From Wallemia ichthyophaga EXF-994 (Eukaryota > Fungi > Basidiomycota), in the NCBI RefSeq assembly GCF_000400465.1, contig NW_008806283.1, positions 60,001 through 92,000 on the forward strand: a DNA stretch of 32,000 bases. Reading direction: 5' to 3'. Below the pieces are notes generated by a model. It ran no database searches. It had not been told where the DNA came from and worked only from the letters and a program-made list of their open reading frames with translations. Positions 1 through 20,700 of this stretch are shown here, in pieces; the first letter of the stretch is position 1; each line of letters begins with the position of its first letter. Made by a program: the position numbers and the translations under genes.

Positions 1-452
1 ATCATTGATGCACACTTGCGGGGCCAAGTTGAACCAACCAAGCGTAATGATTGTCTATTATTTGAACTCTAAGACAAAACAATTGATACTGATCCTGAAA
101 ATTCAATTAACCTCTACACTAAGCGTGACGGTGGATCTCTTCAAGATCTGTCTGTAGCTGATCAAAATATACTTGAGACATTCGGTTCTCTGAACCGAGA
201 TACTGCTGTCGGAAAGCTCCTCAACTATTTTGCTGCTAAATATACCAAGCGTGGAGATTGTCAACTGCTCGGTATTCAAAATAAAGCTATTCAACTCAAG
301 ATTCAGAAGTTAATCGATATCTACACGAATGGTAATGAGAATCATCCAAGTATGGCAATCACGAGGATAATATAATTGTTGTTGGAGCTCACGTTAACGA
401 CATTCTCAAAAAGCGCGAAGACACTGTTGCGGAAAGACAAGCTGGTCTCTGA
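1..452 (+). pseudogene. Lys-Arg-repeat (Kex2-processed-type) secreted peptide precursor, paralog A; 5' end lies outside the window; disrupted
   Basis: Frame 1 reads ...PTKRNDCLLFEL*DKTIDTD...YTKRDGG...YTKRGDCQLLGIQNKAIQLKIQKLIDIYTNGN, with an in-frame TAA at 70-72 where the paralog has CAA (LQDK). A 1-nt shift near 337-339 continues as ESSKYGNHEDNIIVVGAHVNDILKKREDTVAERQAGL* (stop 450-452). Confidence 0.7.
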
Positions 453-1297
453 ATTTTTCTCAGGGCTACGGGAAGCGCCTAAGAGCTTTCAAATTTCTAC
501 TTAATTGTTATTGTTATCTTCCCACCTTTCACGTTGTACACATTTGTTAATTGAGTGAGTTTTAAATGAAAGCGCAATTGCGTCATCTTCGTTACAATCT
601 TAATGTCTCGCTTTTATGGGGATGGTGACAGTTGATCGAGCTAAATTACGGAAAAATAATTCTTAAATGTTTCGAGGAACAGACGATTAGCAATGTATGC
701 AAGGAAACCCACACTTACCAAGTCATTGAACAAACATTACATTACAGGCTAACCAAAGTTGTCTCTTTAGTGGATGCTCAGGTATTCATTAATACGGTAG
801 CTTACAGAGCAATCGAAGAGCTTCACCACTTATAGGAGACACACGAAGGCAAATTACTTCATCAGCCCCATATCATGACAAATATTCGCTGATAGCGGCG
901 TGCTAAGCGACATTACTTACTCGCACACAATATTTCGCAAAAATTTGAAGCAAGTGAAATTCATATGAGACATAGCTGTTACCATATGGTACCCATCTGA
1001 GAACCAAGCGTACCTGAACCACAATTTCATGCCGAGCAATTGCAGTCTAAAATTGGAAACCTTCTGCAATATGTATTGTTTCGAAACATCTTTAAGACAC
1101 TGTTGTTTTGCTTACTGGGACTAAGACGGGGTTAGTTAAGCATACAGGGTCAAGTATCTTACGTAAATAACGTCACTATTACATTGAACGATTGAAAGCT
1201 TGGCCGGGTTGGATAACCCATACTCTAACTTTAAGACTCTCTATTTTTAAAATAGCCACCAATACAATCTTTTTACTAGAATAACAAGGTAAGTACA

Positions 1298-1713
1298 ATG
1301 AGATTGTCTTTACTTGTCGTCTCATCAGTCATCTGCGCTGCTGCTTCTGTAGTGCTGTTTGCTGTAAGTTGAATAATACTTTGTCACTGCTAAAGTGAAT
1401 GCAGAATTACCTTCCAAATGATATAGCTCCCACCAAGCGTGGTGACGAGCAGCTGATCAGCCTTCAAGATGAAGCTATCGATCCTGATATCAAGCTTTTG
1501 GTCAAAATTATCTTCAACGGAACTGATTCATCCTCAACCAGCAAGCGCGATGACAAGCAGTTGATAGGCCTACAAGATAAATCGTTTGATCTTGACATCA
1601 AGGGTTTATCAAAATTATCAAAAACGGAACTGAAGAATCATCTAAGCGTGAGGTTGCCGCTCCCAAAATTCAAGCTGGCCTTTGAGCTGGCGTCTTCTGA
1701 TTTGCCTTTTTAA
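1298..1713 (+). CDS. Lys-Arg-repeat secreted peptide precursor, paralog B; C-terminus frameshifted (ancestral stop probably 1683-1685)
   Basis: Exon 1 (1298-1363) encodes a signal peptide, MRLSLLVVSSVICAAASVVLFA. Intron 1364-1404 (gtaagt...gctaa...cag) is phase 0. Exon 2 has the repeats KR-GDEQLISLQDEAIDPDIKLLVKIIFNGT and KR-DDKQLIGLQDKSFDLDIKGL. Confidence 0.75.
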
Positions 1714-2129
1714 GTGATGTTATCGCAGCTGCGGCATGTAGCTAAGCGTTTTCTTTTGTATATAACACGTACTCTAAACTTTTTATTACAAATTAGTGTG
1801 TTAATTAGTGCCGCATTGTAATGTCTAAAAATAAAGCTGACTTGTCAATTGGCTGTGATGAGCCAAATTACTTTAAACTAGCTCTTCATAGCACTTCAAT
1901 GACTAAAAACTTGAGCAGAGCAATTTTGCTATAAGTCCGTAGCGAATAGGTTTGTGAAGAGCTAGAACGTGTTCATATCCTTGCTGGAGTTGTGTAGCGC
2001 TCTGCAATAATAAAACTAGTTTTAGTATGTTTCAGGGAGAGAAATTGGAATATGAAAATAACCGTTCTTACTAACTTGGCCTCTACGACTCTAATGCAAA
2101 TTGATTACCCTTACACCCCCATGATCTAA

Positions 2130-2556
2130 ATTTCAAAAGGCTGTGATCGCAAGCCAGACCCCGATTTCAGTGTTCTGCTGATCCATACTTTTCTATGCTT
2201 TTATGTATACGACCAAGTATGATGTGAGTCGAAGCGACAGTAGTTCTTCCTGGTACCAGGATTATAGCGATGAACGCCATGTTTCGTAAAACGTATACGC
2301 GTTCATAAAGCGGAATATTTGAAATATTGAGTGCTTGCGGTTTATATCAATCGAAATGCTGTATTCTCATCGATGTCATCGATGAAACGAGGAGGATATT
2401 CCATATACATCATATAGCGTGCTCTAGAGTGATTTTGGATCATTGCTTCCTTCAGAGCGCAGGACGCCATTTCGAGCGCCGGGCATATAAATCTGGCAAC
2501 GTCATATTTCTTACTATCACAGCTACCAATTTTATTTGGAGATCATCAAAAGTCAT
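2130..2556 (-). pseudogene. Possible decayed F-box-like gene fragment
   Basis: ATG at 2556 gives MTFDDLQIKLVAVIVRNMTLPDLYARRSKW, resembling the F-box L-P-x-E-h-h-x-x-I pattern. Several in-frame stops follow. The downstream boundary is approximate. Confidence 0.25.
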
Positions 2557-3524
2557 AATCAGCATTTGAGATGAGACAGGTGGTAGTGGAAAAACTCAAT
2601 TTGGTGGATATTGAGCGAAGTGCTGATAAGAATATGTTTGGAATGCTGAATTTATCATGAAATTGATTGTCTTGCTATATTGTTCAAATTGTCAATATAT
2701 GCCATTCTTGCGTTCGTCTTCTCACTTACTTGGTCATTTGCAGAGTACCTTGAGCAGCTTTAGCTCGTTAGAATATGTATTACTGTACCAAACTTTTTCA
2801 GTGCTCAAATTTTTGTCAAAGTGCCCTTTCATCACATAAGCACATCCTAAAGTCGTTGGAGATCCAAGACGAGTCAAGATTGAGCGTTTCTGAGATGTGA
2901 GGAAGGAGTTGAATTGTGTAATATTCAAAAGCACTCATAAATCCACTAAATTTGTTTATTGATGATCTCGAGATGCGTGGTTATATTGTGCAATGTTTGT
3001 AGCATCTTTGAGAGCATGAGCGCTCTTATGTAGCTGGAACGTAATAATTTTTATAATCAAGGCTTTCAATTCATTCGATTAACCCTCCCAAGTGGTCAAT
3101 TTGCACCCATTCGGCTGTTTGAGGACAGCTTCGAGGGTGTTTGGCGAATCATGCAGCTGTATCATTAAAGCAATTCTACAGTGTTTCAATGCGCCCATGT
3201 TTACATTAATGTTTAGATTCAAACATCGACTCTAGCGCGTCATCAGCTGCGCGTGGATGGCCAGCAACGTTCGGCCCACTCGGAACATCAAGGCTGTGCT
3301 CAAACCGGCCAGATAAATTCGCAGAAGTCTCTTTCATTTCAAAAAGAGCTACTTCTGTTGTCTGCAAGGTCTGCAAGCAATAAAGAAATCATTACTTGTA
3401 GAAAATCCCTTGTCACGCGTTCAGGGACACACTCTAGATGGATCCATTTTTTTCGCTTTTCTTCGCTGAGCTTGCGTAAAATTTCTTTCAGCACAACATT
3501 CAAAGGTTCCACTCTTTCGTAGCA

Positions 3525-3793
3525 ATGAAATTCATGATCTTCGCCTCTGTAGCCGCTATTCTTGGCTCAACCATCGCTACACCAGTTACAGTAAGTGTCT
3601 GGCATTTTCAAAGCATGTGACTAACGCAAAGCTATAGCGCGATGGGCAAGCTGTCCCAGACCTTCTCGCTGCACTCGGGCTCACTCAAGACCAGAAGGCT
3701 GCAGTACCAGGGTTACTCAAAAATCTTGGCCTTGCACCAACTGAAAATGTTGAAGCTGCATTTACTGTACCTGAGGCTCCAGCTGGATTCTAA
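3525..3793 (+). CDS. Small secreted cysteine-free protein (73 aa) with two amphipathic repeats
   Basis: Exon 1 (3525-3590) encodes MKFMIFASVAAILGSTIATPVT. Intron 3591-3637 (gtaagt...ctaac...tag). Exon 2 (3638-3793) encodes RDGQAVPDLLAALGLTQDQKAAVPGLLKNLGLAPTENVEAAFTVPEAPAGF*. Not in the ORF track. Confidence 0.8.
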
Positions 3794-4571
3794 ACAGCCA
3801 AATGATATCTGTAACGTCAGTAACATCGACTCAGCACAAGTGTTGGACACACTTGCGCTGCTTGTACGATTTTTCTCATTTGTCACACTCATGATACATA
3901 TCTTAAATTTGCAATACTATTGCAAGTTTTCAACGAAAATGACTCCGTAGCATTTTATCTTTACTATTGCCTTGCCAATCCCAATCACTTTTATGTAGAT
4001 GGTAATTTTGCGTTAGCAACCAGTACACCTTTCTAATGAAGCTGCATTTTAATGCTCTTTTATCTTTAGGTACTTCGCGTGAATTAGCTGTATTCTGTGT
4101 GTATCTATTTCGTGTTTGCGCTAACATCTGGTAGAAACGCGCTTGTGTTTGGCGTTTTGTATCGACACAAAGAAAAAGAGTGGTCAGCTTCTATTGAAAT
4201 GATAGCACTTGAACTGCACAATACACAAAAATATTTCAAATCGGAGTCCTTGTGGAAATACCGTTGAGCTCAGTCTTATCGCATTCTTGATCGTATGCCT
4301 GTAGATCCTCGATCGCCTTCACGTCATAGCTTTTTATGATTAGTGCGAGTGATACGCGAGATCGCTTATTCGCACGGCGAGGGTGATCATTTTTATATCT
4401 GTGACGATGCCATCTAAAACTTTGCTGTCTTAAGGAAGATATTTTTGATCTATGCAGCCAATTTAGGATTAATTGTACTGAATATTTTCACGTTAAGGAA
4501 CAGCACATTAGACATCATCGCGAAATTAAGACATCTTAAAACAATTATCAGGTCTATACACTCTTTTAGCA

Positions 4572-4890
4572 ATGAAAATTGGAATTGTCGCCGCTATTGC
4601 CACCATTGTTAGCATGACAGTTGCTGCGCCAGTGACTGTTAGTACACAGTAATTCGTCAGGTCATATCTAACCATAAGTCAGACTGAAGATGGATATTTT
4701 GGATGATACCGGAATCCTTGTAGGAAATATTTCCGGGACTATTGTCGGGAGTTCTTCTGGAGGTCCTTTCGGGGGTCCTTTCAGGGGTGATGAAGGGGCT
4801 TCCGTGAGGAGTGTTGTCGGGATTGTTGGGGACGATGTCTGGGATGTACTATCAGACACTGCAGATTTAATAGAAGTGATCAGTGGATGA
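4572..4890 (+). CDS. Small secreted Gly/Asp-rich cysteine-free protein, paralog of the 3525 gene; splice acceptor ambiguous
   Basis: Exon 1 (4572-4637) encodes MKIGIVAAIATIVSMTVAAPVT. Donor gttagt at 4638, branch-like ctaac at 4668. The AAG acceptor at 4689 joins in frame to ORF 4690-4890; the CAG acceptor at 4682 gives a stop after 7 codons. Confidence 0.6.
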
Positions 4891-5023
4891 AATCCTGATC
4901 TTTAAACTTGGCACATTGTTCAAACGTATCTGAAAGGAAAAAGGTATTCGATTGAGCAAGTCTATTATTACAATACAAGTCAAATTATATATGGTAACTA
5001 AATTAAGATCGATTAATCATGTG

Positions 5024-8000
5024 CTAGATAGTGATCGCTTCGAATGCCTCGAGGATCCCATCATTGCCTCCAAACTGTTTGAGAAGTTCGTGTGTGATAC
5101 TTTCGGTATCAACGCCATCACCATCCACTACCTCTGTCTTAACTTTAGCCTTCTTGAGTGCGCGATCGAAATCGACGAGCATATCACTGCCCACAACGAT
5201 CTCAAAGTTCAATTTGCGCATTTGTGATCTGAATACGATAGCCAATGTGACGACGAGATCTCCTTCTATCGACACATTAAAGCTGAGTTTGTATACCTGG
5301 GCGAGACGCTTGAACTGAGCGTGCACATTCTTCACGTTCATCCATATGGTCGATATGCGCTGCAAGGTATAGCTGAGCTGAGTGTCCTGTGATATGCCCT
5401 CCTCTGTCAACTGACCACGGAGACAGTCGAGGAGGTATTCCAGCAGAGGGCGCAGCTCGCCTTTCTTTGGGGGAAGCAAGTCCATTTCCACCCCCTGCTG
5501 TGAGATGCTCAGCGCCAACTCATTCGCGTAGTTGAACTTATGCGTCGATTGCGACAGGTGCACAATTTGCCAGCTGTGCAGAATCTGCAGCGATTCATAT
5601 TCGCCTGTGTCGACATGTCAGCAGTGCTACTCTCGCACAAATACCACACTCACGTTTCCGCTTCATGGCTTCCGCTTTCGTAAGGCAGCGCACCATATCC
5701 CACTCTTTTCGATTACTGTCAATGGTGTGTGTGTTTTGAGCCAGAGTCTCTTGCTTCGCCTCGAGGCGTGCTCTGAGACGCGCAAGCTCCTCGTTGTTGG
5801 ATGCTATTTCGGCTTTGTACAGCTCCAGTGGCTGCGCCTGCTCCGCTATAGCCTCGCGCAGACCCTCGACTTCCTCCTTGTCGCAGCTGGCGATATCGCG
5901 CACAATGTCTCTTTCTCTGCGCAGCTCCGTCTCCAGTTTGTCCTTGAGGGCGTGTAGCTGCGGGAGATTCTCACCAAGTGCGCCTCTAGTCTCCTGTAGT
6001 ACCCTGGCATCCTTCTCGAGACCATTGAAGGACTCGTTGAGAGACTCCGCATGACCGCTCACTAGCTCCTTCCTCCAGCCGTACCACACTCGCTTAGCGT
6101 TCAGGCGCGAGTTATTTTTCACGATCTTGAGCTGCGCTTCAATACGCACGCGCATATCCTCACTAGCTAGCAGATAATCAACTATCACTGGCGGATTCTC
6201 GTTATCTACTTCACGTTCGTAGCTGTTGAGTGCCTCTATCCCCTCGCTGATGTAGCGCTTCAGCTCGTGGCAGCACCAATACATCATCTCCAATTTGGGG
6301 CCGGTGACCGCATGTGCGCGCAGATATTCGAGCGAGGATGGCTCGTGCATCGGTGCATTTTCCCCACTTAGACCACCCGGACCCACTGTGGAGCGACGCT
6401 TGATGGTTGAAATCCCATCGAGGAATTTCATGTCGGTGAGTTCGAGGAAATCGTTGAGACTGATTTGCACCGGTGCTTCGACGCTGCTTTCGCCATTGTC
6501 CTCCTGTTCTTCCTCTTGCATTAAACCTTCTATCATCCGCTCTGTTTCGGGGCCTGCTGCAAATTCGTTGCGGATTGGTGGAGCCGGCAGTGGTGAGGGT
6601 GCAGCTTCCGGTTGTGGTGAGGGCTCATGTGTATTCGCAAAGGCCTCCTTCTGTGGCGTCGTCACACTCGACGCTAGCCTTAGTGATTGACGTTTAGGAG
6701 TGCTCATCGGCGAGCCTGGGTTTGAGGCACTGATCGATCTGCGCAGTTTAGATGGTGTCATTTGCTGTGCATGTAGCGAGCGTCTGCGAGTTGGTGTGCC
6801 GCTTTGCTCTTGTTCTGGCGCCGTCTTATCCATGTCCATCGCATCACTTTCGGTTGTAGTATTGCGTCCTTGCTGCGTCACGTTAGTATTCTCCTTCACT
6901 AGTATACAAAACCCACCTCAGCTTCTCTCCTCCTTTGCTCCTCCTTCACGCGCTCCTCTTCAGCTTCGCGCTCGTACTCCCTCTCCCTGTCATTCTTACT
7001 CTGCTCCTCCTGCTCCTTTTCAGTTGCGAGTGTGTCAGGTGTAGCTTCGAGCGCTTGTGTGGAGAGTGCTAGTGAAGATCTTCGTCTTGGTTTGTGTGTG
7101 AGTTTTTCTTTCTCGCCACCTTTCTCAGCTGCAACATCGAGTTTAAGTGGGGAAGGACGAAGTGGCGAGGCGAGCTGAAGACGCTGTACGAGTGGGGACA
7201 TGAGCTTTTCCGTGTTAATTTGGTGTTCCTGTTGCTGTTTATGCTCATAATTTCGTTCCCACTCCAGATCATTGTCTTGCTCTTTCTTCTCTTCTTCGCC
7301 ATCATCCTGTCTCACCTCACCAGCAAAAGACGCTCTCTTCTTGTTAGGACTTTTAGCTGCGTTCTTGAGGGCACTTCTTAGCGGCGAGCTCGTCCCAGCG
7401 CCACCCAAGGCACCTCCGAGACTATGTCTGACGCTTTTCGTTTCTTTTTTCATGAGACTCGATTGAGTGGGCGCTGCGAAGCTGCTGCGTTTCCCTCCTT
7501 TACTTTCAGCATCTGGTGATGAGATGGAGATGGAGGCCTTTTTAGGCGAAGGAGCAGGAGCAGGAGCAGGAGTGAATGATGTGCTACTTTTGAGGGCGCT
7601 CTTGAGTGATGGTCGTGGACCGGCGCCTGCCTTGAGGGGTGACGCTTTAACAGATGGTGCGAAACTGACACGACTGACACGCGGTCCGAGACTTTTCCGC
7701 AGACGACGCGTCTCGTCGTTAACTAGGATACCCTTACCGATTGGCTTGGTTATTTCCATAGTCATCGTCGCGTCTGCGTTGTCGTCAGAGTCACTTGAGT
7801 CACTCGAGTCACTCTCTTCTGGAATGGTGGGGACGTTCATAGGTCCACCGACAGCCTGAGTCATCTCCATTGTCATCGACTCATTCTGCGCAGGGTTGCT
7901 AATTAAGGACATGTCGGCAGTTGATTTTCCGTCATTTGCTGACTCTTGATCGTGCTCTTCCGCTGCCTCGTCACTGCTATCGTTCGTTGCCCCCTTCTCG

Positions 8001-9768
8001 GCTTCCATCAAACCACCGACGGCGCCAGTCATCTCCATGGCCATTGACTCGTTTTCTTGATCATCCTCACTAATACCACTGTCGCTCTCGTTGATATGGT
8101 TCTTTGTCTCATTGACACTCTTCTCGGCCTCCATCAAGCCACCGACGGCGCCGGTCATCTCCATGGCCATAGATTCGTTGTTATGGGTAGTATTACTAGC
8201 TAGTGACATATCAGCAACTGAGTTATTGTCGTGATGGTGGTTATTAGCTTTTTCTCCGTTTTCCTCATGGTCATCTTCCTCTCTCCTCTCTCCACCCAAC
8301 ATACCTCCAACAGCCTGGGTCATTTCCATCGTCATAGACCCGTCGGCTATCTTATGTGCGGTGGAGTCATTGCGATCAATGTGGGTTATAGCAGCTTTGG
8401 TGAGATCCATGTCGTCGTTGCTGTTACTCTTACTGGTATTGCTATCGCTATCATTATCGCTATCACTGCCGTTACCTAAGTGGTGCTGCATTGGTGCAGG
8501 TTCTGGAGGTGGGGGTTGCATTAGCATGTGCTGGTCAGCCTCTTCATCATCACTGCTACTGCTACTGCTGTTATCAACACGTCCGCTGACACTCCTACTA
8601 CCCTCTGGCGAGCCCGAGTTCTGCTTAATGACGCTGCTGCGTCGATCTAGGCTCGATCTTCGTCTGCCTGTTTCGAAGTGAGGTAATTTGGGCACACCGG
8701 CTTGGGACATGGACACGGTGAAGTCCATAGTGGTGTCTGCTTCATCTTCACTGGAGGAGGAGGAGGAGTTCTTCTCGTTATCCTCGTTGTTGTCCACATT
8801 GGTGTTGCCGTCGTTGTCGTTCTTCTCGGATGCTGTGGGTGAGAGAGTGAATTGTGGGAGTTGCATGGGTGGTTGGGGTGGTAATGCAACAGGTTCTGCT
8901 GCTGTGAGTGGAATTGGAGATGATTTATTGCTCTGTGATGATAATCTGGGTGATTTACGCGTAGGCGAATGGGATATAACCTTTTTTGGTAAATTTTGGG
9001 GTGATTTCGGAGACTTGGGTGACTTCTTGGGTGACTTCTTGGGTGACTTCTTGGGTGAGTTTTTTGGCGACTTGTTGTCATCACTCTTACTAAACACGTG
9101 ACCAACAGCCTCAGTAAGATCCATTTGCATAGTATTGTCCTCTGCGTCGTTCGCGTCTTGTGTTGGACCATCATCAGACTCAGTATCAGAGCCATCAAGC
9201 GGTCTTTTTCTCTCAAAAGCTTTCTTAAACGCGTGAGTGACGTCTTGAGTAGCTATGGACATGTCAGAGGTGTCTGAATCTTGGTTTTCTTGTGGGTGAT
9301 GATCCTGTGGATGATGTTGGGATTTTTTAGGGGATGGAGACCTGCGTGGGCTAGAAGAGGCCTGTTTATTGCCCTCTTCATCTTCAAACAAACGTATGAA
9401 GCAATGGCTTGCGAATGAGACTCTGCGACTCGCTTCAGATTTCCTAGGTGCTGCGTGCTTGACAGGATTCTGCGGGAGTTCCTCCTCCTCGTCTGAATCT
9501 GGTGGTGGCTGTGGTTTGAGAATTGAGCGGCGTGGTTTCTAGCGTGTGTGAGTGGTGGTGGTAGATATCAAAGCAAACCACGCACAGCCTTCCTCCTTGC
9601 TAATTTCGTGGGTGTAAGTTCAGCGTCTGAATCTGATTCTTGGTGGTCATCTCCGCTGCCATCTCCGTGGTTACCACCGCTACCACCCAGACTCTTGGAA
9701 CGCAGCTTCCTATTCTCCTTATTTTCCTTGTTGTTTAGATACGTCGTCGACTTTCTACGCGAGTCCAT
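5024..9768 (-). CDS. SPC105: Kinetochore protein Spc7/Spc105 (KNL1), about 1534 aa, 4 exons
   Basis: Introns 9539-9585, 6873-6916 and 5605-5653 join ORFs 9568-9768, 6899-9391, 5595-6899 and 5024-5563 in frame. N-terminal SILK (RRSILK) and RVSF PP1-docking motifs, multiple MELT-like motifs (MDLT, MDFT, MEMT, MEIT), and a C-terminal coiled coil plus globular region. Confidence 0.93.
7994..8179 (-). repeat. Internal 60-nt duplication (period 126 nt) in Spc7 encoding NESMAMEMTGAVGGLMEAEK twice
   Basis: Copies at 7994-8053 and 8120-8179 are identical in protein and differ at a few synonymous sites. Confidence 0.9.
9015..9059 (-). repeat. 12-nt coding tandem repeat (ttgggtgacttc, about 3.7 copies) encoding KSPK/SPKK repeats
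   Basis: Directly visible. S-P-x-K matches the CDK consensus site. Confidence 0.9.
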
Positions 9769-9782
9769 CTCTCTTCGCCTTC

Positions 9783-9793
9783 ACGCGTCGCGT
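9783..9793. promoter_or_regulatory. Overlapping MCB-like elements (ACGCGTCGCGT) just upstream of the Spc7 start
   Basis: ACGCGT plus an overlapping CGCGT 15 nt upstream of the ATG, within the 104-bp gap after the upstream gene's stop codon. Confidence 0.3.
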
Positions 9794-9872
9794 AACGTCG
9801 TCGTTATCGCACAAGGAAAACCGAAATGGAAATTAAAGTAAAAATAATAAAAATAAATACAATTTACTAAAA

Positions 9873-11018
9873 TTAAGACAACGGATCATTAAAAATTTCA
9901 TTCAGTTCATTCATTTGCGGTAGATCATTCGGCATGTTAAAGTCTAAGAATGAGTCGTGGTGTTCTGAAGGTGGTGGTGGTTGAGTGGGTGGATTAGGAG
10001 GGTTACTTGAAGGTGCTGGTGTGTTTCCTGTATTTCCTGTATTTCCTGTATTTCCTGCGTTACCGCTGCTACCAGAATTCCCTATACCTCCTACACCACC
10101 TACACCACTCGCACTCGGCTGCTCCGCGCTGCTTGGAGTGCTGTTATGTTGCTGGTTATCGATATTCGCCAATATCTCACTTGGTGTGATGGCAGGCGAC
10201 TGATTCTCCTGCGATGGCGTCGCTCCTCCGTCGTCGTTATTGAACGATTCATCATCATCCTCCCTGGACCTCCTCTTCTTATTAATCCGCTTGTTCTGTC
10301 TGGTTACGCGCTGCTTGGGCGATTCGTCCGCTGGCGAGTATCCGTTAATTTGTGGCTGGTAGTGTGATGTGTGTTGGGCGTGTTGGGCTTGCTGTTGCTG
10401 TTGCTGAGCTTGTGCCTGCGCTTGTGCCTGTGCATGCGCTTGCACTTGTGCCTGCACTTGTGCATGCTGCAAATGGGGTGATGGTTGTGGATGGTGGCCT
10501 GGCATCGGTGGGGGCGGCATAGACGGCATTCCCATACCCATACCCATCCCCAAATTCACATTCATTCCAGGTCTCATCATTGGCGTGTTGTTTGGGTTCG
10601 GTGTATGCTGGGCATTGTTGTGTGCATTCGGCGTTCCATTTACTCCTCCTGGTCCCCCTGCTCCTCCTGCTCCACTCGCTCCTCCTACGCCCCCGGCATT
10701 TGGATGCCCCGGATATGGCCGTGGCTGTACCCTCTGCTTCATCATGTACTTCTTCTGTGAAATATCATACCGCTGTTGGAGATTATAGTTTATTTCATAG
10801 TAATTCGGTGATCTAAATTGATTTTGATACTGCAGCTCAAGATTTATCATAAACCATTCAAATAGATATGATTTCGGTGTATCTATCTTAACCGTAGGCT
10901 CTGGCAGCGCATTTTGTATCGGCTTCGATTGAGTTTCCGCGAGGAACTGCTGGGCTGTTTTGACTAAATTATTTTTATACAGATAGTCATATATGTAGCC
11001 ATTTAGTTCTTGATTCAT
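9873..11018 (-). CDS. LisH/LUFS-domain transcriptional regulator (Flo8/Mss11/Som1/SSDP-like) with Q/P/G-rich low-complexity tail
   Basis: ELNGYIYDYLYKNNLVKTAQQFLAE (LisH) followed by IDTPKSYLFEWF. First in-frame ATG is at 11018; the ORF track start at 11069 is a TTG. An upstream exon cannot be excluded. Confidence 0.75.
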   Translation of the reverse strand: MNQELNGYIYDYLYKNNLVKTAQQFLAETQSKPIQNALPEPTVKIDTPKSYLFEWFMINLELQYQNQFRSPNYYEINYNLQQRYDISQKKYMMKQRVQPRPYPGHPNAGGVGGASGAGGAGGPGGVNGTPNAHNNAQHTPNPNNTPMMRPGMNVNLGMGMGMGMPSMPPPPMPGHHPQPSPHLQHAQVQAQVQAHAQAQAQAQAQQQQQQAQHAQHTSHYQPQINGYSPADESPKQRVTRQNKRINKKRRSREDDDESFNNDDGGATPSQENQSPAITPSEILANIDNQQHNSTPSSAEQPSASGVGGVGGIGNSGSSGNAGNTGNTGNTGNTPAPSSNPPNPPTQPPPPSEHHDSFLDFNMPNDLPQMNELNEIFNDPLS

Positions 11019-11692
11019 TGAGGCAATCTGGGTGTAGGTGGGTGATCGCTCTTGATGGTTCTTGGTCAAGTGTACAAATAATTGTTTGGGGGCTGAATTT
11101 CGAGGCTATGGGTAGCTAGTAAGGCTTGCAGTAATCGCAAACTTCTAAAATCCTTACATCTCCACTTTCTCACCCGATTCGGCGCCGTTTTCAACTGCTC
11201 GGAGGTCGGACGAGCATGACGAAATCGTACTGAATATAGACACATAAACAAACACACAAATATACAAAATACTTATACAGACTTGCAAACTCTATGCCGT
11301 TTTCATACTTCGGTAGCACTTGCTGATATCGTTCGGATTTGTGGAGGTGTTCGAGTGGAGTACGTTGAGTCGTTGGATCTTGTTTAGTCGACTGCACGGG
11401 AGGCTGGAGAGTGAAATTAATGCACACACACATACACAGCACGCAGCATACAGTACAAGAAAAGTGTAGCAAAAAAATCATGTATACGAGTAAGTTTAGG
11501 TTTAAGTGCAACTTTCAGTGCAAGTCTGTCCCTCCTCCTGAAGAACTGAGCTTGCAAATGCCAAACAGAGTTGAGTGAGAGAGAAAATGGCAGCGTCCGA
11601 GATTTGTACAGATGAAAACGAGGCGATGAGCTGATGAACTGCTGAGAAGAGCAGAGAGAATGAAAAGAATCTAATAAAATCACAACACCACT

Positions 11693-12931
11693 CTACTGCG
11701 TTGGATTGTAATACGCCATTGTAGCGTTCCCCGCGTTAGGATCGGTTGGGTTAGAATTGGCGACGATATCGTCCGTGGCGAGCGCGAGCAGGCGAGACTG
11801 AAGACTCCCTGCATCCATATCGCCTTCGTTGCTAATAAGGGTAGCGAGCAACCCGCTCACGATAGGTGCCGACATGCTACTACCGCTGAGGTAGAGGGTA
11901 GCCTGATCGTCTGCGTTACCCGCCGACAGAATATCGACACCAGGAGCGTAAAGACCGACGCAATCCCCATAGCTCGAGAACGGAGCACGAGTGTCGTCGA
12001 TATTGGACGCTGCCACCGTGATAGCGGAGCTGACTCTGGCTGGCGACGAAGCGCAAGCGTCTTCATTATAATTACCAGAAGCAACTACGAAATGAACTCC
12101 GGCGGCAGTAGCGCTGCTTACGATGCTATCCATAGCATTGCTCGCAGGGCCTCCAAGACTGAGAGAAGCAATGCTAGGTCTGTCAGAGTTCTTAGCAGCA
12201 TTTGCCGCCCAATTAACACCAGCGAGTACATCACTCGCCTTGCCTTGCCCATCAGCGTTGAGAACCTTGACGCTGATCAGCGACGCTTCTTTCGCCGTCC
12301 CGTAGGTGGCACCGCCGATGAGGGCGGCGACGTGCGTACCGTGGTGCACCTGGTCCGTGCCATCGCCTGATGTGCCGTTGTAGCCATAAGATGCGCGGCC
12401 GCCGAATTCGGTGTGCGATGTACGGATGCCTGTGTCGATCACATACACATCCACTCCAGCTCCCGCGCCAGTCCAGCTGTATGTGTAGTCTTGCGCATGG
12501 GGCGACGCATCCGCTGGCAGTGCATTGCGCTGGTTTACCCGCTGCAGATTCCACGTCGCATCGCTCTGCGTCGCGTACGCTTCAACTGGCACATCCTCCT
12601 CCATGTCGGCTATGTCTGCGAGGAGGGTGTCGAATAGGTTGCCGAGCAGCTGCAAAGGTGTGTTAGAATTTTTCTGTAGTGCGCAGCAATTTCAACTCAC
12701 CCCACTTCCCATAGACAGGGCGTAGCCGTTGAAAAAACCATCGTACTTGTGGTTGATGGTGCTGTGCTCTCCGAGTAGCCCCTCGAGCATGCTATAGTGG
12801 GCATTTTGGTCGGTGTCTTCTTTGAAACTCATTATGTAGTTCCCTTCACTCACTCCTCCGCCAAGGCTCAGGCTGTCGAGAAGACTGGCACTGGCAGCGG
12901 CTGCGAGTGTGAGGATGAATGGAATGCGCAT
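11693..12931 (-). CDS. Secreted subtilisin-like serine protease (S8A, proteinase K type) with I9 propeptide, about 395 aa
   Basis: Signal peptide MRIPFILTLAAAASA. Phase-0 intron 12650-12700. Catalytic motifs VYVIDTG, HHGTHVA and SGSSMSAP, plus oxyanion Asn in ASGN. Confidence 0.95.
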
Positions 12932-13195
12932 CGGTTGTTTCTGATGTTTTGAAGGGAGTAATGGAAGCAATGGGAGCAATACGAGCAATATCAGTAATTC
13001 AATTAAACCGCAGTGCAATTTAACCGAACCAGCCGTCACGTCACGTATTAATTTTATCCTTATTGGGAAAGTGATATGCATAATAAATAAGGCGTGAGCA
13101 GCGCTAGATGTTTCCAAGCGTGATTTGGAGGTATCCTATATGGTGCTGCGGAAACAGGAAAAACTTCACTACAATGCTTGCAAAGACAACAATTC

Positions 13196-13572
13196 TCACA
13201 CAGTCGAACCGAGACCCACGATTCCCATTGGTACCGCAAACCCCTTGGCTTGGCCACTGCCCTGGATTTGTCTCTTCTGACGGTATTGATCATGTTGTGC
13301 GCCAGGAGCATCCATCCAGCTATGAGGGACGGGCGCACCATTAGTTCCGGATGCTCCCGATACCTCCGACTTTCCAAACAACTTCTTCAATTTGAGTATA
13401 AATTTGCTCGGTTTCTTCCAAGTAGTCGTTGGTGGATCGACGTTGTCTTAATATTTCCCTCAAGTCAGAAACGAAACATCAACACAAAAACACACCTACA
13501 ATTAACGTAATAGTATCGATTAGTAGTGTAGTCAAATAATTTATTCCATCCAGCGGGCAGTGAAGGTGACAT
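13196..13572 (-). CDS. Small single-WW-domain protein (107 aa)
   Basis: Exon 1 is 13572-13500, intron 13447-13499 (gtaggt...ctgac...taag), exon 2 is 13446-13196. The splice reconstitutes LPAGWNKLFDYTTNRYYYVNYNVDPPTTTWKKP, a complete W...YYxN...TTWxxP WW domain. Not recovered as one ORF by the track. Confidence 0.75.
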
Positions 13573-13585
13573 TAGCGGTGTTGAA

Positions 13586-15325
13586 TTATACGAGAGAAGA
13601 TGAACGTTCGGTGATGACGAAAGGTTCTGGTGAGATGGGCGAGTTGACGCCTGAGGTGTAATCGAAGAAGGTGGTGTTGGTGTTATTATGACCGCTGAGA
13701 TCCAGTCTCGGTGGGACATGCACACCTCTCCTGACTTCCTCCGCCAGCAGCAGAGTCTCTTCCGTAGAATCAGGCTGCTTGTTGTAACGCGGTGGGCCTT
13801 CCTCATCCTCCACCTGCGTCCCTTCGTCCGTGTACAGCTGGCTATATGCGGGCAACTGTGAGGGTGGAAGGAGACCTTTGCTTTTGAGTAGAGCCAAGCG
13901 CTGCGCTTGCACTTCGAGCATGCTATCGTTCGAGCGTCTGCTGAACCACACCGGTATGGTAATGTCAATGCTCTCCCCCCGCCATTCACCGTCTCCGGGA
14001 ATCTTGCGCACAATATTGAGTATAAGCCGCAGCGCGTGTCTTATTTTTACATACGGCGTCTCGCAGTCAGGGTAAGGGGATGAGGTGGCAGCGTGTGAGT
14101 GTGAATGTGGGTGCTTGTCCGAGTCAGTTTCAGTGTTGTTGTGTAGCTCCTGACCCTTTGTCTGACCTCCCTCACGCTCCCCCTTGGTGGGCATGGGCAA
14201 GGTGAGGGCGATGCGTGCGGTGAGCTTCCCCCCAATATCTACGCCCTCCTCACCGAACGTATGCGTCGCAAAAGCCGCTGTGGCAGGCGGGGGACCTACG
14301 CCACGTGCGACTAGGCGTGAGCGCGTGTAGGATGTGGGGACACTGCTTATCCCAAGCGTGTTAGCTATATCGCTCAGCGCGTGTTCCTGGTATGCGTGAG
14401 CAAACGGGATGAGTGGGTATTGCGGTGGTTGGCATTGTGGGAGCGGGTATGTGGCTAGATAGCGTTGACGTGGTTCTGAAGTGTAGTGTATCTCCTCGAT
14501 GCAGCCAAGTTGGAGACTTTCGAGACGCGCCTGTGTCGCGTGACCATTTCCATTTCCATTTCCACCTGCATTGCGCCTGCTCCCATTATCACCGCTTTCA
14601 CAATTATCGCCCTCCTCATCACTCACAAGCCCCGTAAATATATCCAACTTGAGCTCGTCGTCGTCGGTGAAATACCACATGGGCGTCTTGATCCCAATAC
14701 GCACGGGTTTGAAGTCGCGTGTGTCGTGTGTGGGGCATTGCGACTTTATGTTGTGCACGCGTGAGCGGAGGTGCTGATTGCGGTGGCGGCTGATGAATAT
14801 CTCACACTCAGGCGCGAGCACAGTGTGTTTCTTGATGGAGTTGTTGAGAGGCCAGAGGAGCGAGTTGCGTTTGTTCTCAGCAGCTTCAACGGTGGACTCC
14901 ATCTTTGCGAATAAGGAGTAAGAGGTACGTGAGGATGGCAGGGACATACTTGGTGGCAGCCAGCCATTCAAACGTAGATCAAAGACGACAGAAACGTTGA
15001 TTGGGTGTTCTGAGTCATTCTCGAAAGTGGAAGGCTCGCTGCCCCGCTTAATGATCTGGTCAGAATTGTGAGCTAGGCGGTGAGAACTGAGTCTGCCTTC
15101 AGCATCGCTGTACTGGGAGCAGCCTTGGAAGGTGACAGAGAGCGAGTGTATCCGGAGCTTCTTGCGCTGTAGAGGAGGGATAGAAATGATTATATTGCCA
15201 GAAAGGCTGTACTGCGAGCACGTTCTGGTGGTTCCATGCATGCTGATATGATTCGAATCAGGGATGAGGCTGATATTCATGTTGGGTGGATTGCTTGGGT
15301 TGTTATAATACGAGAACTCATACAT
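13586..15325 (-). CDS. Arrestin-related (alpha-arrestin-like) adaptor with PY motifs
   Basis: N-terminal beta-rich segment (YSLSGNIII...LRIHSLSVTFQG, VVFDLRLNGWLPPS, SYSLFA), PYVKIRHALRL, and motifs PPQY, LPAY and PPRY. The start could be 15325 or the second Met at 15280. Confidence 0.65.
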   Translation of the reverse strand: MYEFSYYNNPSNPPNMNISLIPDSNHISMHGTTRTCSQYSLSGNIIISIPPLQRKKLRIHSLSVTFQGCSQYSDAEGRLSSHRLAHNSDQIIKRGSEPSTFENDSEHPINVSVVFDLRLNGWLPPSMSLPSSRTSYSLFAKMESTVEAAENKRNSLLWPLNNSIKKHTVLAPECEIFISRHRNQHLRSRVHNIKSQCPTHDTRDFKPVRIGIKTPMWYFTDDDELKLDIFTGLVSDEEGDNCESGDNGSRRNAGGNGNGNGHATQARLESLQLGCIEEIHYTSEPRQRYLATYPLPQCQPPQYPLIPFAHAYQEHALSDIANTLGISSVPTSYTRSRLVARGVGPPPATAAFATHTFGEEGVDIGGKLTARIALTLPMPTKGEREGGQTKGQELHNNTETDSDKHPHSHSHAATSSPYPDCETPYVKIRHALRLILNIVRKIPGDGEWRGESIDITIPVWFSRRSNDSMLEVQAQRLALLKSKGLLPPSQLPAYSQLYTDEGTQVEDEEGPPRYNKQPDSTEETLLLAEEVRRGVHVPPRLDLSGHNNTNTTFFDYTSGVNSPISPEPFVITERSSSLV

Positions 15326-15556
15326 AAGATAAATAAATCAGCCAAGCGCGTGCTGACAGCTATGCACGCGTCGACAGCCCATACGTACGTCAACCAATCT
15401 CCGCGTTGACAGCGAGATTGGAATTTAAAATAACAGTGTACAATACACATACGATTTATTTGAGTGAAATAATTTTCATTTTCAGAGCCACAGCCATGGC
15501 CCTATTAGCGTGTCTCTCACCCACTCAGCCAACACAAAAAAACTCAAACAAACGCA

Positions 15557-16291
<735 letters not shown>

Positions 16292-16413
16292 GTTAAATAC
16301 ACTTTATACCCTCTTTTCTTTCCATTCTCACAAATTTTCACAATATTCAATCTTTTAATCTTTTTTTGTTAAATGATTACATTCTAATATTCTTATTTAA
16401 CACATTATAAAGC

Positions 16414-16707
16414 CTACACGGCTCTTTCTTTCGCTGACATGGCCTGGATTACATGTTAGCTGGTCATAGCTACCGTAAGACAACCCACCTCCATCTTCTC
16501 TCTCTCCTTTCTATTGTGATCCACTTTCCTCTTAAGATCTGGCGACAGCTTGTTGTACAGCTCCTCGTCGCTCGGCGTGAGTCCAACCATCAATCCATAT
16601 CCACTTCCCATGACTTTTGGCAATAAGCAACAAACACACAGCACACAGCTTACCCACTCACTCACGCTACTCCAGAATGCCCAACGTCCCCAAGCTATTT
16701 TAACCAT
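16414..16707 (-). CDS. CBP4: Cytochrome bc1 assembly factor Cbp4-like, about 66 aa, 3 exons
   Basis: Spliced product MVKIAWGRWAFWSSVIMGSGYGLMVGLTPSDEELYNKLSPDLKRKVDHNRKEREKMEAMSAKERAV has one TM segment followed by the TPxxEELxxxxxPDL motif. Confidence 0.7.
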
Positions 16708-16752
16708 TTGAGCGTATCAGATGAGGGTAATTTGTACACGCTATCAAATCAT

Positions 16753-17577
16753 TTATCTTGTTTGTACCTTTGCAAGCTCAACGATTGCAGCTCTAGCGAC
16801 AATATGGTCAAGTAAGCCACTTGGGAGGCCAGAGATGGATACTGCCCCAATTGGTCCAGCCACTCCCTTGATATTGATGGGAAATGAACCACCATCTGCG
16901 CTGAAAGACGGGAACTTATTCTCTGTAAATGCATTCATTGTATTCGTCGCCTTCACTTTCATCTTCTCCTGCGACTCCTTAATACGCAAATTGCGCATGA
17001 CAACACGCCCAGTTGGCCCATCTTCAAACACCACCGATGGGAAAACCGCAGAAATGAGATCTTGCAGCTCCTTCCTCGTCATGACTTTAACGCCTGTAAA
17101 ATTCATAAACTGCTGGTACGCCTCGACAAATTCAGTGAGGGGTACTGCGCTGTCACCGTTGAGATCCTCGCACAGAAGCGCATTGAGATACTCAGTGCTA
17201 CGTGCTGGTTCCGAGTTTATCCCTCTTATCACTCCAATTTCCCCATCGGGAAGTGTGTACCTTCCAACGGCGTGGTGCTTCGCTATCAGCGCTTGTCCGT
17301 AGAGATAAGACGACTGGTGGTATTTCTTGCTGATTGCAAGCTTGCCATTCAGCCAATCGTAGTTGGCTGGCGTCACCTCACCGAGAACCCCAGAAGCCAA
17401 CTCTATCCCGTTGAACAAACGCACCGCAAACACTATCCCACTCCCCTCAAAGTTGAAACTGCGGATCGTGTCGGCGATGAACCACGCATCGACACTGTCG
17501 AATTTGTTCAGCGCTATCTTGTCATCTGCTTTCAGTTGCGCGAGTGTTGGGTTGTATTGCTGCTGCTTTACATTCAT
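16753..17577 (-). CDS. GlcG/HbpS-fold (DUF967/YBR137W-like) protein with an inserted RFX-like winged-helix region; intronless
   Basis: N-half FDSVDAW...NYDWLNGK...SSYLYG and C-half GGSFPINIKGVAGPIGAVSISGLPSGLLDH flank an insert of about 110 aa. Confidence 0.75.
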   Translation of the reverse strand: MNVKQQQYNPTLAQLKADDKIALNKFDSVDAWFIADTIRSFNFEGSGIVFAVRLFNGIELASGVLGEVTPANYDWLNGKLAISKKYHQSSYLYGQALIAKHHAVGRYTLPDGEIGVIRGINSEPARSTEYLNALLCEDLNGDSAVPLTEFVEAYQQFMNFTGVKVMTRKELQDLISAVFPSVVFEDGPTGRVVMRNLRIKESQEKMKVKATNTMNAFTENKFPSFSADGGSFPINIKGVAGPIGAVSISGLPSGLLDHIVARAAIVELAKVQTR

Positions 17578-17672
17578 TGCTGTGGAAAGTGAGTGTGTGG
17601 AGTGATGCGTCTTCTGAGTTTGTGTGTGAGTGTGCGTTATGAACAGGTGATGTGGGCACGTCCACCACTACT

Positions 17673-17683
17673 GATAAGCTATC
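17673..17683. promoter_or_regulatory. Inverted GATA pair (GATA-agc-TATC) about 95 nt upstream of the DUF967 gene
   Basis: Sequence ctGATAAGCTATCg contains TGATAA on one strand and CGATAG on the other. Confidence 0.3.
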
Positions 17684-17756
17684 GTTACCCGAGCAACCCG
17701 ACGAGTGAACCCAACTTAGAAAAAATAAATGAATATCAATTGGCTAACAAAAGTCC

Positions 17757-20700
17757 TTAGTTGTAAACTTGTAATGGATGTAAATGATCGGCATTAAAGA
17801 GGAAATTACCAGACATGTCCTCGGCTATTTGTAATCTCGTTAGCACACATATAATATCTTTATTATCCACTCACTCTCTAAAAACTTGGTAGGGTACACC
17901 ACCAAATTCCCCTTGAGCCGATTAAGCAGCTTCTCCATTGCGTCGATTTCACTCCTCGTATACCCTCCAGATTCAGCCGTCATACTTCCATTACGCATAT
18001 TTCTCCGGCTTCTCTGTGGCTTTTGCGCATGTGTATCGTCTTCCCCATTACTCCCACTACCCGCACTCGTCATCCCATTCAAATACTTAGAAGACGTCCC
18101 GCTGTTTGACCTCTCCATACTCTCCTCCACGATCGGCTTCTTGTGTTTCTCAGCCATCATGCTGAAGTTCTTGAACTGCCTCCAAGTAGTCACCGTATCA
18201 TCTGGCGTGCAATGGAACACTTTGCGATAGATTTCCGTGTTATATATCGCTGAAGCTATCCAAATGTCCTCAAAGAATTCCTCCGAACACGGATCCACAA
18301 AACTATCCTTATCGAAATCTGGTCCTAGGAATGGCATAGAATAGGTATTGCCTCTTGTCAGTGCCTGCGTCGATCTCCTACTGCGGCGCTCGTTCGTTAT
18401 CGCCGAACTAGTAGTACTGAATCCTCTCGACCGAGTCCGCCTCTCAAGGTTACTGCCACCGCTCTTGTCAGCCGCAGATACAGCCTCCCCATTCTCACGT
18501 TTATCCGCTTGGTCCTGCTCCACCTTTTTCGCTATACTCCCATCTTCCGCCATCTCCCCCTTGATTTCGTGATAAGACTTTTTTAGCGCACTCTGCAACC
18601 TGTCTATTGGATCAGTTATTTGCAGATCCTCTGCTGCTACATTAGTAGGGTGTCTGTCGTCCTTTGTATGCACGTGGTCGTGCTCAGGCGCCCAGTAATT
18701 AGTTCCTTCAGTATTTGCGATCCCTGGCGTGTTAGGATCGGTTGGTCCAGCTGGGGGTGCTGAATTTGTTGATTCAGCTGCTGCTGCTTCTGCTGCTCTC
18801 CCCTTAGCCATCTGCTCATTCATATGAAGGTCGTCGACATCAATACCGAGATGCTCTCTCATCAATCTTATTCTCAAAGTGTGATTAAATCTCCCAACTT
18901 TGTACGGTCTGCCAGCCATCTCTGAATCTATCATATCAGTGTCGCGGATAATGGAAGCTAACTCCGAATCTCTGTCACCGCGCTGACTGCGCTCGTTGAT
19001 ATTTGCACTTCCTATTATTGTCAATCGATCATCGACAGTCATCGTCTTGGCGTGAATGTAAAGAATCTCCGAAGTGAGGTTACCTGATTTGAATTTACCC
19101 CAGTTGCGCAAACTGAAGAAGGTTATGTAGTCGTCAGGATCAATACCCTCCTTGCGAAGTCTAGCAAAGATCGATTGTGCACCGCGACAGATGGATCTGT
19201 TCTGACAGTCAACGATCAGTCTTACAGATGAAGCTGCAGGGTTGTCTACCGACTGGGAATAGCCTGGCATGAGAGGAATAATGATACAGGCCCTCCACGT
19301 TGTGTTCTCGCGATGTGCGCGAATGATGCGGTTCACTAAAGCATCCCCAATCTGATTCTCAATCACTGTAGTATCCACAATGGTGGATGTAACAAAGAAT
19401 TGATTTTCGATATAGACAAAGTGTTCACTTTTCTGTATCGCCTTGACGTAGGCATTTTGAATCGAGTGCTCGATCTTATCAGGTGTTCCAATCGACCATG
19501 GTCCACAAGAGCGACATATTTGCATCTCGAGTGTACCATTCATCTTTTGCATTTCGAGATCACGGTTGCTGAGGTCGTTTGGTGGTAACAGGAAGGGAAG
19601 CTCGCGACTGTGGTGCTTTGTTCGCAAAAGATAGTTCCAGCGCTGAATGAAGTGGCGCGAAAGATCACGCGCTGGTTGACCAATAAGCTGCAAGCCCACA
19701 TCATGCCATGGCATGCGAGGCGTAGTGCTTCTATCGAACATATCCTCGTATGGCTTGTTGAGGTCGCGGAAATCAGATACACCTGGTATTGAAATAAGTT
19801 TGACATCAACACCATTTACTTTTCAACTTACGTGCATTCGAGTAGTCTTTTCCTGGCCAGATATATTCATCTCCGTTTTCACCTCCCTCATCGACACAAA
19901 TGTGCTGTGGAGTGTCCCATCTACCGAAACAAAGATCTAAGCCACCCATAAATACCATTGTCTGATCAACTACACATAGCTTTTCGTGGTGCGAGAAGTA
20001 CAATACACCTGTGGTGATATGTGAAGGAGATCTCTGAACCATGATGTTCTCATTCAACGAACGCAGTTTTTGTTTCGTGTAGTTTGAGTCGATAGGCGTA
20101 AACTCATTTGAGACTTCTCTATACACAATAACGTAAATTTTGACGCCTTCTGCTGCTTTCCTTTGAAGGAGATTTGTAAGGGTCCATTTAGGATGACCTG
20201 GCCTGCGCAGCTGCAGCTCAGGCGATAACCACCAATCGTGAATATATATACTTTCCCGGGCTAATGAAACTGCACGAGACAGCTGCCAGAAGTAGTCGCG
20301 TCCATCAATAAGCCATTGTGCACTGACGTTGAGACGAACTGGTGCGAATGAGTCAAATCTGTGAATCTTTGACCATAGTGTGTTATTTTTCATCATCATC
20401 ATGCTCTGGATAAACTGTTCCATTTGTCTTTCGTTTTTTGCTACGAGCTTCATCCTTCTTTCTGCATTGCGGATATAGAATGTGTGTGTTGAGGTATCTT
20501 TAGTCTTGCTCTTTTTCACTTCATTTGAGACGGCGAATTGAGGGTCAGAATCAACGGCATGCTCATTTATATTCTGCTGCTGCTGCTGCTCCAATCTAGC
20601 TTCCTCAACACTATCGTCACGATCATGTTCTTGTGAGCTTGATGGACGTGTTTCAGTGCTCTTCATCGTATCTAACCTGGAATCCTTAGGTTGAGAAACT

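Follow-up and report, generated by a model that had tools for sequence, protein, structure and literature searches.

Two neighbouring Lys-Arg repeat loci restricted to Wallemia ichthyophaga, probably a decaying orphan gene pair

Near the start of a 32,000-nucleotide stretch of the genome of Wallemia ichthyophaga EXF-994 (the window; NW_008806283.1, positions 60,001 to 92,000 of the forward strand) lie two related loci, A (1-452) and B (1298-1713, gene J056_000458), both on the forward strand. A preliminary description of this DNA, made from the letters alone, had presented them as a paralogous pair of precursors with Lys-Arg (KR) repeats, predicted to release amphipathic peptides of about 30 residues in the manner of fungal repellents or KEPs. 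The window matches scaffold KE007233.1 of GCA_000400465.1 base for base, window base 1 being position 60001 of that record, and the species, a basidiomycete and obligate halophile, has a genome of 9.6 Mb (PMC6738226). Both loci sit in the 5.6-kb interval between KNL1 and CLASP, which is gene-poor and has 39% GC. We read A and B as a young, dispensable and decaying orphan gene pair that arose by tandem duplication, and not as an active repellent or toxin system, and we put the probability of this reading at roughly 60%; a peptide-releasing system, if there is one, would be a remnant at best.

Locus B is a two-exon gene. Exon 1 (1298-1363, forward strand, as are all features of A and B) encodes the signal peptide MRLSLLVVSSVICAAASVVLFA, ends in phase 0 and is followed by a GTAAGT donor; the intron is 41 nucleotides (nt) long (1364-1404, GTAAGT...GCAG), and exon 2 as annotated in EXF-994 (1405-1713) runs to a TAA stop at 1711-1713. 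The spliced product is identical to EOR00648.1/XP_009268361.1, the hypothetical protein J056_000458 of EXF-994, and the exon-intron model of the NCBI annotations is also that of the first annotation, from 2013, in which the gene is GME2692_g. This last correspondence was made by protein sequence; the assumption that J056 and GME gene numbers are equal was ruled out, GME458_g being another gene. The signal peptide ascribed to B earlier was borne out, as a heuristic hydrophobicity analysis finds a core of 18-20 hydrophobic residues after M-R, with Ala at position -1.

Exon 2 opens at 1405 with a ten-residue pro-piece, NYLPNDIAPT, which is followed by the first KR (1435-1440). Unit 1, GDEQLISLQDEAIDPDIKLLVKIIFNGTDSSSTS, has 34 residues including an NGT sequon (1441-1542), and after the second KR (1543-1548) comes the first half of unit 2, DDKQLIGLQDKSFDLDIKG, which passes into a frameshifted tail. 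The cause is a 1-nt deletion at 1608, where one A of GGGTTTAATC is gone to give GGGTTTATC, throwing ...IKIIKNGTEESSKREVAAPKIQAGL* (to 1685) out of frame; the annotated EXF-994 protein runs on instead as LSKLSKTELKNHLSVRLPLPKFKLAFELASSDLPF and ends ...GLSKLSKTELKNHLSVRLPLPKFKLAFELASSDLPF at 1713. The former frame can still be read from 1609 to 1685: it holds the rest of unit 2 (IKIIKNGTEESS), the third KR (1644-1649), the tail EVAAPKIQAGL and a TGA at 1683-1685, and in P0002, P0003 and P0010, which are intact alleles, it is translated. Units 1 and 2 are identical at 20 of 31 positions (65%, E=3e-12), and together they make up 66 of the 115 residues of the intact allele.

That intact allele, MRLSLLVVSSAICAAASVVLFANHLPNDIAPTKRGEEQ...GLIKIIKNGTEESSKREVAAPKIQAGL, is found in other strains of the species (TIA90743.1 and three further accessions); the 115-residue form was seen in five NCBI and three Logan assemblies, and the frameshifted 124-residue form in EXF-994 and at least 13 further assembly contigs. 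Since the frameshift is present in many independent assemblies it is not a sequencing error, and the deletion at 1608 is a true polymorphism, derived and now the majority allele. In the in-frame part of B there are six nonsynonymous changes (R2I, V11A, V19M, Y24H, D35E and T61I, the last of which abolishes an NGT sequon) and three synonymous ones, a 6:3 ratio close to the neutral expectation, with no clear purifying selection. One intact allele additionally carries K110T in its tail peptide. Exact-protein look-ups with mechanically called open reading frames (ORFs) gave no match because of the strain differences and the frameshift. On the Logan SRR25394065 contig (L003), the gene caller took TGA as Trp in ORF P0001 (1986-2333) and so gave B a spurious 20-residue tail, WAGVFWFAFLSDVIAAAACS; ORF calls on contigs of this kind need checking.

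Locus A is cut by the window start and is annotated neither in EXF-994 nor in the population genomes inspected. It consists of three degenerate units and a tail, KKR-EDTVAERQAGL, that ends with a TGA at 450-452; its KR sites lie at 40-45 (AAG CGT), 121-126 and 247-252, and the KKR of the tail at 408-416. By sequence similarity A is a true paralog of B, as first proposed: BLASTP between them gives E=6e-9, the DNA of 244-290 is 74% identical to that of 1432-1478, and amino-acid identity is about 37%. A hidden Markov model of the unit detected no further copies in the window or in two flanking loci taken from other strains, all translated in six frames. The repeat consensus that had been drawn from the two loci fits both units of B and the third unit of A; it fits the first unit of A in part and the second poorly. 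Likewise the shared ending, KRE...QAGL followed by a stop, is present in both, but neither locus is one continuous reading frame in EXF-994, and the frames had been stitched together.

The ATG exon of A, which starts outside the window (76 nt before base 1), does not share a frame with the body. Within unit 1 a TAA (70-72) stands at the conserved Gln of the QLxxLQ motif, where the other haplotype, as well as L015 and L016, has CAA. Between unit 3 and the tail the frame breaks again (332-387). A 56-nt intron (GTAATG...TTGGAG, with ...IDIYTN|AHVNDILKKRE... as the product) would account for this, and so would an old frameshift common to both haplotypes. An alignment of A from 14 sources, which reduce to nine distinct sequences, shows the locus disabled in all 14, by different lesions in two haplotypes. 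In haplotype 1 (EXF-994, L010-L013, L015-L017) the 5' part has lost 12 nt and gained a +1 insertion, which leaves no in-frame ATG, and EXF-994 and L010-L013 have the TAA at 70 in addition. In haplotype 2 (L003-L007, L014) the ATG is in frame, and KR has become KC (TGT) at positions 43 and 124, that is, in the first two KR sites; an extra A at 237, a +1 frameshift, precedes unit 3. Conservation of the KR sites splits between the loci: both sites flanking unit 1 are kept in all B alleles, but two of those of A are lost in haplotype 2.

The two haplotypes differ at 6.2% of sites in A and at 5.0% in the A-B spacer, so that A evolves like non-coding DNA and looks neutral. The exons of B differ by 1.1-1.5% and the downstream non-coding DNA (1685-5023) by only 1.6-2.1%, which is weak evidence of constraint. 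More generally, two old haplotypes are present over 1-1500 (compared with L003-L007 and L014), 5-6% apart over A and the spacer and about 1-2% apart from there through at least window position 25326; genome-wide, single-nucleotide polymorphism density among strains is 0.13-0.40% (PMC6738226). L015 and L016 look like recombinants between the two.

The suggestion that the family is lineage-specific held up well. Of 5.8e9 proteins searched by word index, a single cluster came back, made up of W. ichthyophaga sequences only, and a HMMER scan with an A+B profile over 1.84e9 representative proteins, run without the word index, returned two B alleles, an A ORF fragment and P0006 only. P0006 (602 residues, eight stretches, E=1.9e-13) was rejected as a family member: the sequence is a tandem repeat in translation, and nine Pfam families unrelated to one another match it as well, with E down to 5e-20. 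Searches of Pfam at E up to 10 and of PDB sequences with A and B gave no match. In a related genome, Logan SRR25399871, KNL1 and CLASP are still neighbours (77% and 72.5% nucleotide identity, respectively), and the interval between them (L008 4547-6125) holds a DUF1365 gene and no A/B-like unit; of this DUF1365 gene the window shows no detectable trace. Within the reach of these searches, the A/B family is specific to W. ichthyophaga.

Transcript data for B come from Table S6 of Zajc et al. 2013 (PMC3849046), in which GME2692_g (375 nt, 124 residues) is exactly the B protein. Its abundance was 1.50 reads per kilobase per million (RPKM) at 10% NaCl (11 reads) and 5.45 RPKM at 30% NaCl (41 reads), a log2 ratio of 1.86 with a false discovery rate of 5e-5; ribosomal-protein genes reached RPKM 5,000-20,000 in that experiment. 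Transcription of B is therefore very low, and it rises modestly at high salt. The top-expressed gene of the species at 30% NaCl lies outside the window: GME4675_g (282 nt, without annotation) has an RPKM of 59,657 and rises 23-fold from 10% to 30% NaCl (PMC3849046, Table S4), and it is a far better candidate than B for an abundant salt-induced small protein.

We infer secretion, kexin cleavage and, if there is any, peptide activity for B from its predicted features, and on that footing Kex2 processing of the intact allele is plausible. Its product would be a small secretory pre-pro-protein with two internally duplicated units of about 34 residues, each with a sequon and ending in KR. Most likely it would enter the endoplasmic reticulum, be N-glycosylated, be cut by a Golgi kexin after its three KR sites and be trimmed by Kex1, setting free two acidic peptides of 34 and 32 residues and the 11-residue tail. 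The frameshift of the window allele destroys unit 2, the third KR and the tail, leaving a single unit flanked by KR on both sides, and normal release would be limited to the pro-piece and peptide 1. The idea of KR precursors releasing peptides of about 30 residues thus survives insofar as the architecture of the intact B allele permits such release; A is a pseudogene, the B copy in the window is frameshifted, and a Kex2-processed peptide is plausible for the minority intact allele only.

All three Arg residues of the mature intact protein lie in KR dipeptides (shuffle P ~0.001), although two of the three sites are copies of each other and so are not independent. The first site (APTKR), with Pro at P4, fits the extended Kex2 motif of PMC8528282. 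Mature intact B has 16 acidic and 14 basic residues and no Cys at all, in agreement with the scarcity of Cys remarked on earlier. The predicted 34- and 32-residue peptides have net charges of -5 and -2 and mean Kyte-Doolittle hydropathies of -0.1 and -0.6; their strongest amphipathicity has beta-strand periodicity (180 degrees), with a hydrophobic moment of 0.92-0.96 over IDPDIKLLVKI and FDLDIKGLIKI, and in each unit the NGT sequon directly follows the hydrophobic stretch. AlphaFold2 gave no confident structure for the intact allele (predicted local distance difference test, pLDDT, 39.5; predicted template modelling score, pTM, 0.18).

Measured against known systems, B shares general architecture with several and detectable kinship with none. 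KEPs were defined by Le Marquer et al. 2019 as having at least four KR/RR fragments and at least three similar repeats separated by KR/RR/KK, and W. ichthyophaga was listed there as a KEP-rich species with six KEPs (PMC6339444). Like KEPs, B has an N-terminal signal peptide without a transmembrane domain (by heuristic analysis) and similar units split by KR, which in the intact allele occupy more than half of the protein, where at least 15% is asked of KEP repeats. Unlike KEPs, the EXF-994 allele has three fragments with one complete and one truncated unit and the intact allele two similar units, so that B falls short on both repeats and fragments and would not have been called a KEP. The HMMER scan found no homolog among database proteins, and the survey's KEPs would be among these. 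Rep1 of Ustilago maydis is likewise a secreted basidiomycete pre-pro-protein; cleavage at KR yields amphipathic peptides, poor in Cys and about 34-53 residues long (PMC3133707). B resembles it in peptide length and in its lack of Cys. However, Rep1 has 12 repeats in 652 residues and is highly expressed and filament-specific, whereas B has two units in 115 residues, very low expression and acidic, glycosylatable units. A Rep1-type precursor carries about ten or more KR-separated peptides, far above the two of B; as for Rep1-type assembly, beta-type amphipathicity is present and expression in liquid culture is RPKM 1.5-5.4. No similarity to Rep1 repeats was detected in the profile scan of the 1.84e9 representatives, which, apart from one spurious repeat protein, retrieved nothing outside W. 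ichthyophaga.

The K2PP proteins of Outram et al. 2021 (PMC8528282) resemble B in that a short, probably disordered pro-piece stands immediately behind the signal peptide and is closed by KR, the P4 residue being an accepted one (APTKR), but they release one folded effector domain, whereas B lacks a predicted fold, carries additional internal KR sites and does not come from a pathogen. Candida albicans Ece1 also combines a signal peptide with KR-delimited peptides of about 30 residues; there is no homology, and the acidic, moderately hydrophobic peptides of B are the opposite of the cationic membrane-inserting helix of candidalysin, with no hydrophobic cationic helix-forming peptide among them. 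Domains of the tailoring genes that accompany fungal RiPP precursors (of peptides made by the ribosome and modified after translation) with KR-flanked cores, of the ustiloxin/dikaritin type, such as DUF3328/UstYa and tyrosinase, are absent from the window. Other candidate identities were set aside. A basidiomycete mating pheromone precursor was rejected because B ends in QAGL, with no CAAX motif, and because the pheromone candidates published for W. ichthyophaga are other sequences, none of which turned up in the ORF and Pfam survey of the window. Linkage to the mating-type (MAT) locus, which the divergent haplotypes and a Spo14-like phospholipase D (PLD) had brought to mind, as in Cryptococcus, was rejected too: the published MAT genes (STE3, SXI1, HMG, BAP31) were not seen in that survey either, and the allele distribution is unlike the published split with an inverted MAT locus in four strains. 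A likeness to PIR repeats (Q-x-x-x-x-Q) was dropped in the absence of a DGQ core and of a Pfam PIR match.

The remainder of the window has an ORF content typical for a compact fungal genome in the same survey. The neighbours of the A/B locus are CLASP and KNL1/Spc7 (5024-9391, reverse strand), the latter with an array of MELT-motif repeats and a low-complexity stretch of KSPKKSP type; in-frame indels of 6 and 24 nt in KNL1/Spc7 distinguish the two haplotypes. Between B and KNL1/Spc7 a 70-residue gene is annotated in EXF-994 (3534-3793, forward strand), but its model varies by strain (50, 59, 70 or 73 residues) and no Pfam match lies nearby, so that the gene call is probably a doubtful one. Positions 1-6000 contain no tRNA or Rfam family. 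Farther on, the PX-domain PLD (Spo14-like; 17840-22227, reverse strand) appears as three long ORFs, presumably split by introns, and the window also holds genes for a Sla2-type I/LWEQ protein, a Cdc42-like GTPase, a 14-3-3 protein and an S8 subtilase.

The reading of A and B as a decaying pair, with A as a dead copy, follows from their place in an AT-rich, gene-poor and unusually divergent interval, from the scant transcription and from the little constraint detected. Several findings weigh against it. The internal sites 2 and 3 of B (STSKR, ESSKR) have Thr or Ser at P4 and match the minimal dibasic motif only. The 3.6-fold rise of B at 30% NaCl leaves room for a retained function, as do unit 1 and its two flanking KR sites, kept in every B allele. 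The exons of B are somewhat less divergent than the upstream spacer. The expression data describe liquid culture at two salinities, so induction elsewhere, for example in aerial growth or sporulation, is possible. Finally, the absence of homologs hinges on gene and ORF calls in the databases, with other Wallemia genomes lying outside the direct DNA-level search.

Nothing supports a repellent or toxin function for A and B. The repellent- or KEP-like character suggested for them was not supported: the searches linked them to neither Rep1 nor Ece1 and to no entry of Pfam or PDB, and B has fewer than the three repeats of the KEP minimum. An active system in which KR-released amphipathic peptides act as Rep1-like surface amyloid or as surface-active agents is quite unlikely in our view. 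Peptides of 32-34 residues are at the low end of the Rep1 range (34-53 residues, PMC3133707), and the Cys-free mature protein, the strong beta-strand moment, the KR sites conserved in all B alleles and the modest induction by salt would suit such a role. Against these stand a dead A, only two units in a B whose majority allele is frameshifted, strongly acidic peptides with a glycosylation sequon beside the hydrophobic stretch, the lack of both a confident structure and a relative, and an RPKM that is, in the conditions tested, far below the need of a structural surface protein; moreover, the hydrophobin family of the species is already expanded (PMC3849046). A candidalysin-like cytolytic peptide or other toxin precursor can practically be dismissed: beyond the generic combination of a signal peptide and KR sites there is nothing to recommend it, the peptides are acidic, of low mean hydrophobicity and not of the cationic or lytic type, homology is lacking (HMMER, Pfam, PDB), expression is very low and the organism is a free-living obligate halophile. 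That the intact J056_000458 might be a salt-induced, W. ichthyophaga-specific mini-KEP, whose kexin-released acidic, beta-amphipathic peptides of about 34 residues would aid the thick cell wall or cell aggregation, is a long shot.

Unlikely, yet deserving some credit, is the view that B is a small secreted glycosylated tandem-repeat protein left uncut between its units, with the pro-piece alone removed, as in K2PP proteins, or nothing at all, and the internal KR sites incidental products of duplication. Site 1 alone fits the extended Kex2 motif, the recurrence of the copied internal sites is not independent evidence, and one sequon per unit suggests a glycoprotein; but KR is the canonical kexin site and would be exposed in a protein without a predicted fold, every Arg of mature B is in KR, and A in haplotype 1 also retained KR at its unit boundaries. 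It is also rather improbable, about as much so as the repellent system, that neither locus is or ever was functional, B being a non-functional orphan ORF (a proto-gene or pseudogene) whose reads are transcriptional noise. The restriction to one species, the low RPKM, the near-neutral 6:3 ratio, the frameshifted majority allele, the decay of A and the gene-poor interval of 39% GC would all be expected, but a clean signal peptide on its own exon and a spliced phase-0 intron are retained in all B alleles. Moreover, the A-B duplication is old at about 37% identity, yet the layout of the units, their KR boundaries and the QAGL tail persisted in both copies, which argues for a period of selection on the ancestral gene.

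The significance of the pair, read as decaying, is limited: B would be at most one more uncharacterised, species-restricted small secreted pro-protein among the fungal proteins with Kex2 sites, although it brings with it a natural loss-of-function polymorphism. Should the mini-KEP reading be true, the natural frameshift and the intact alleles would form a ready-made allelic series. There is also cautionary value here, in that frames stitched by eye made a pseudogene and a frameshifted allele look like an intact "system". [quoted passage not shown]

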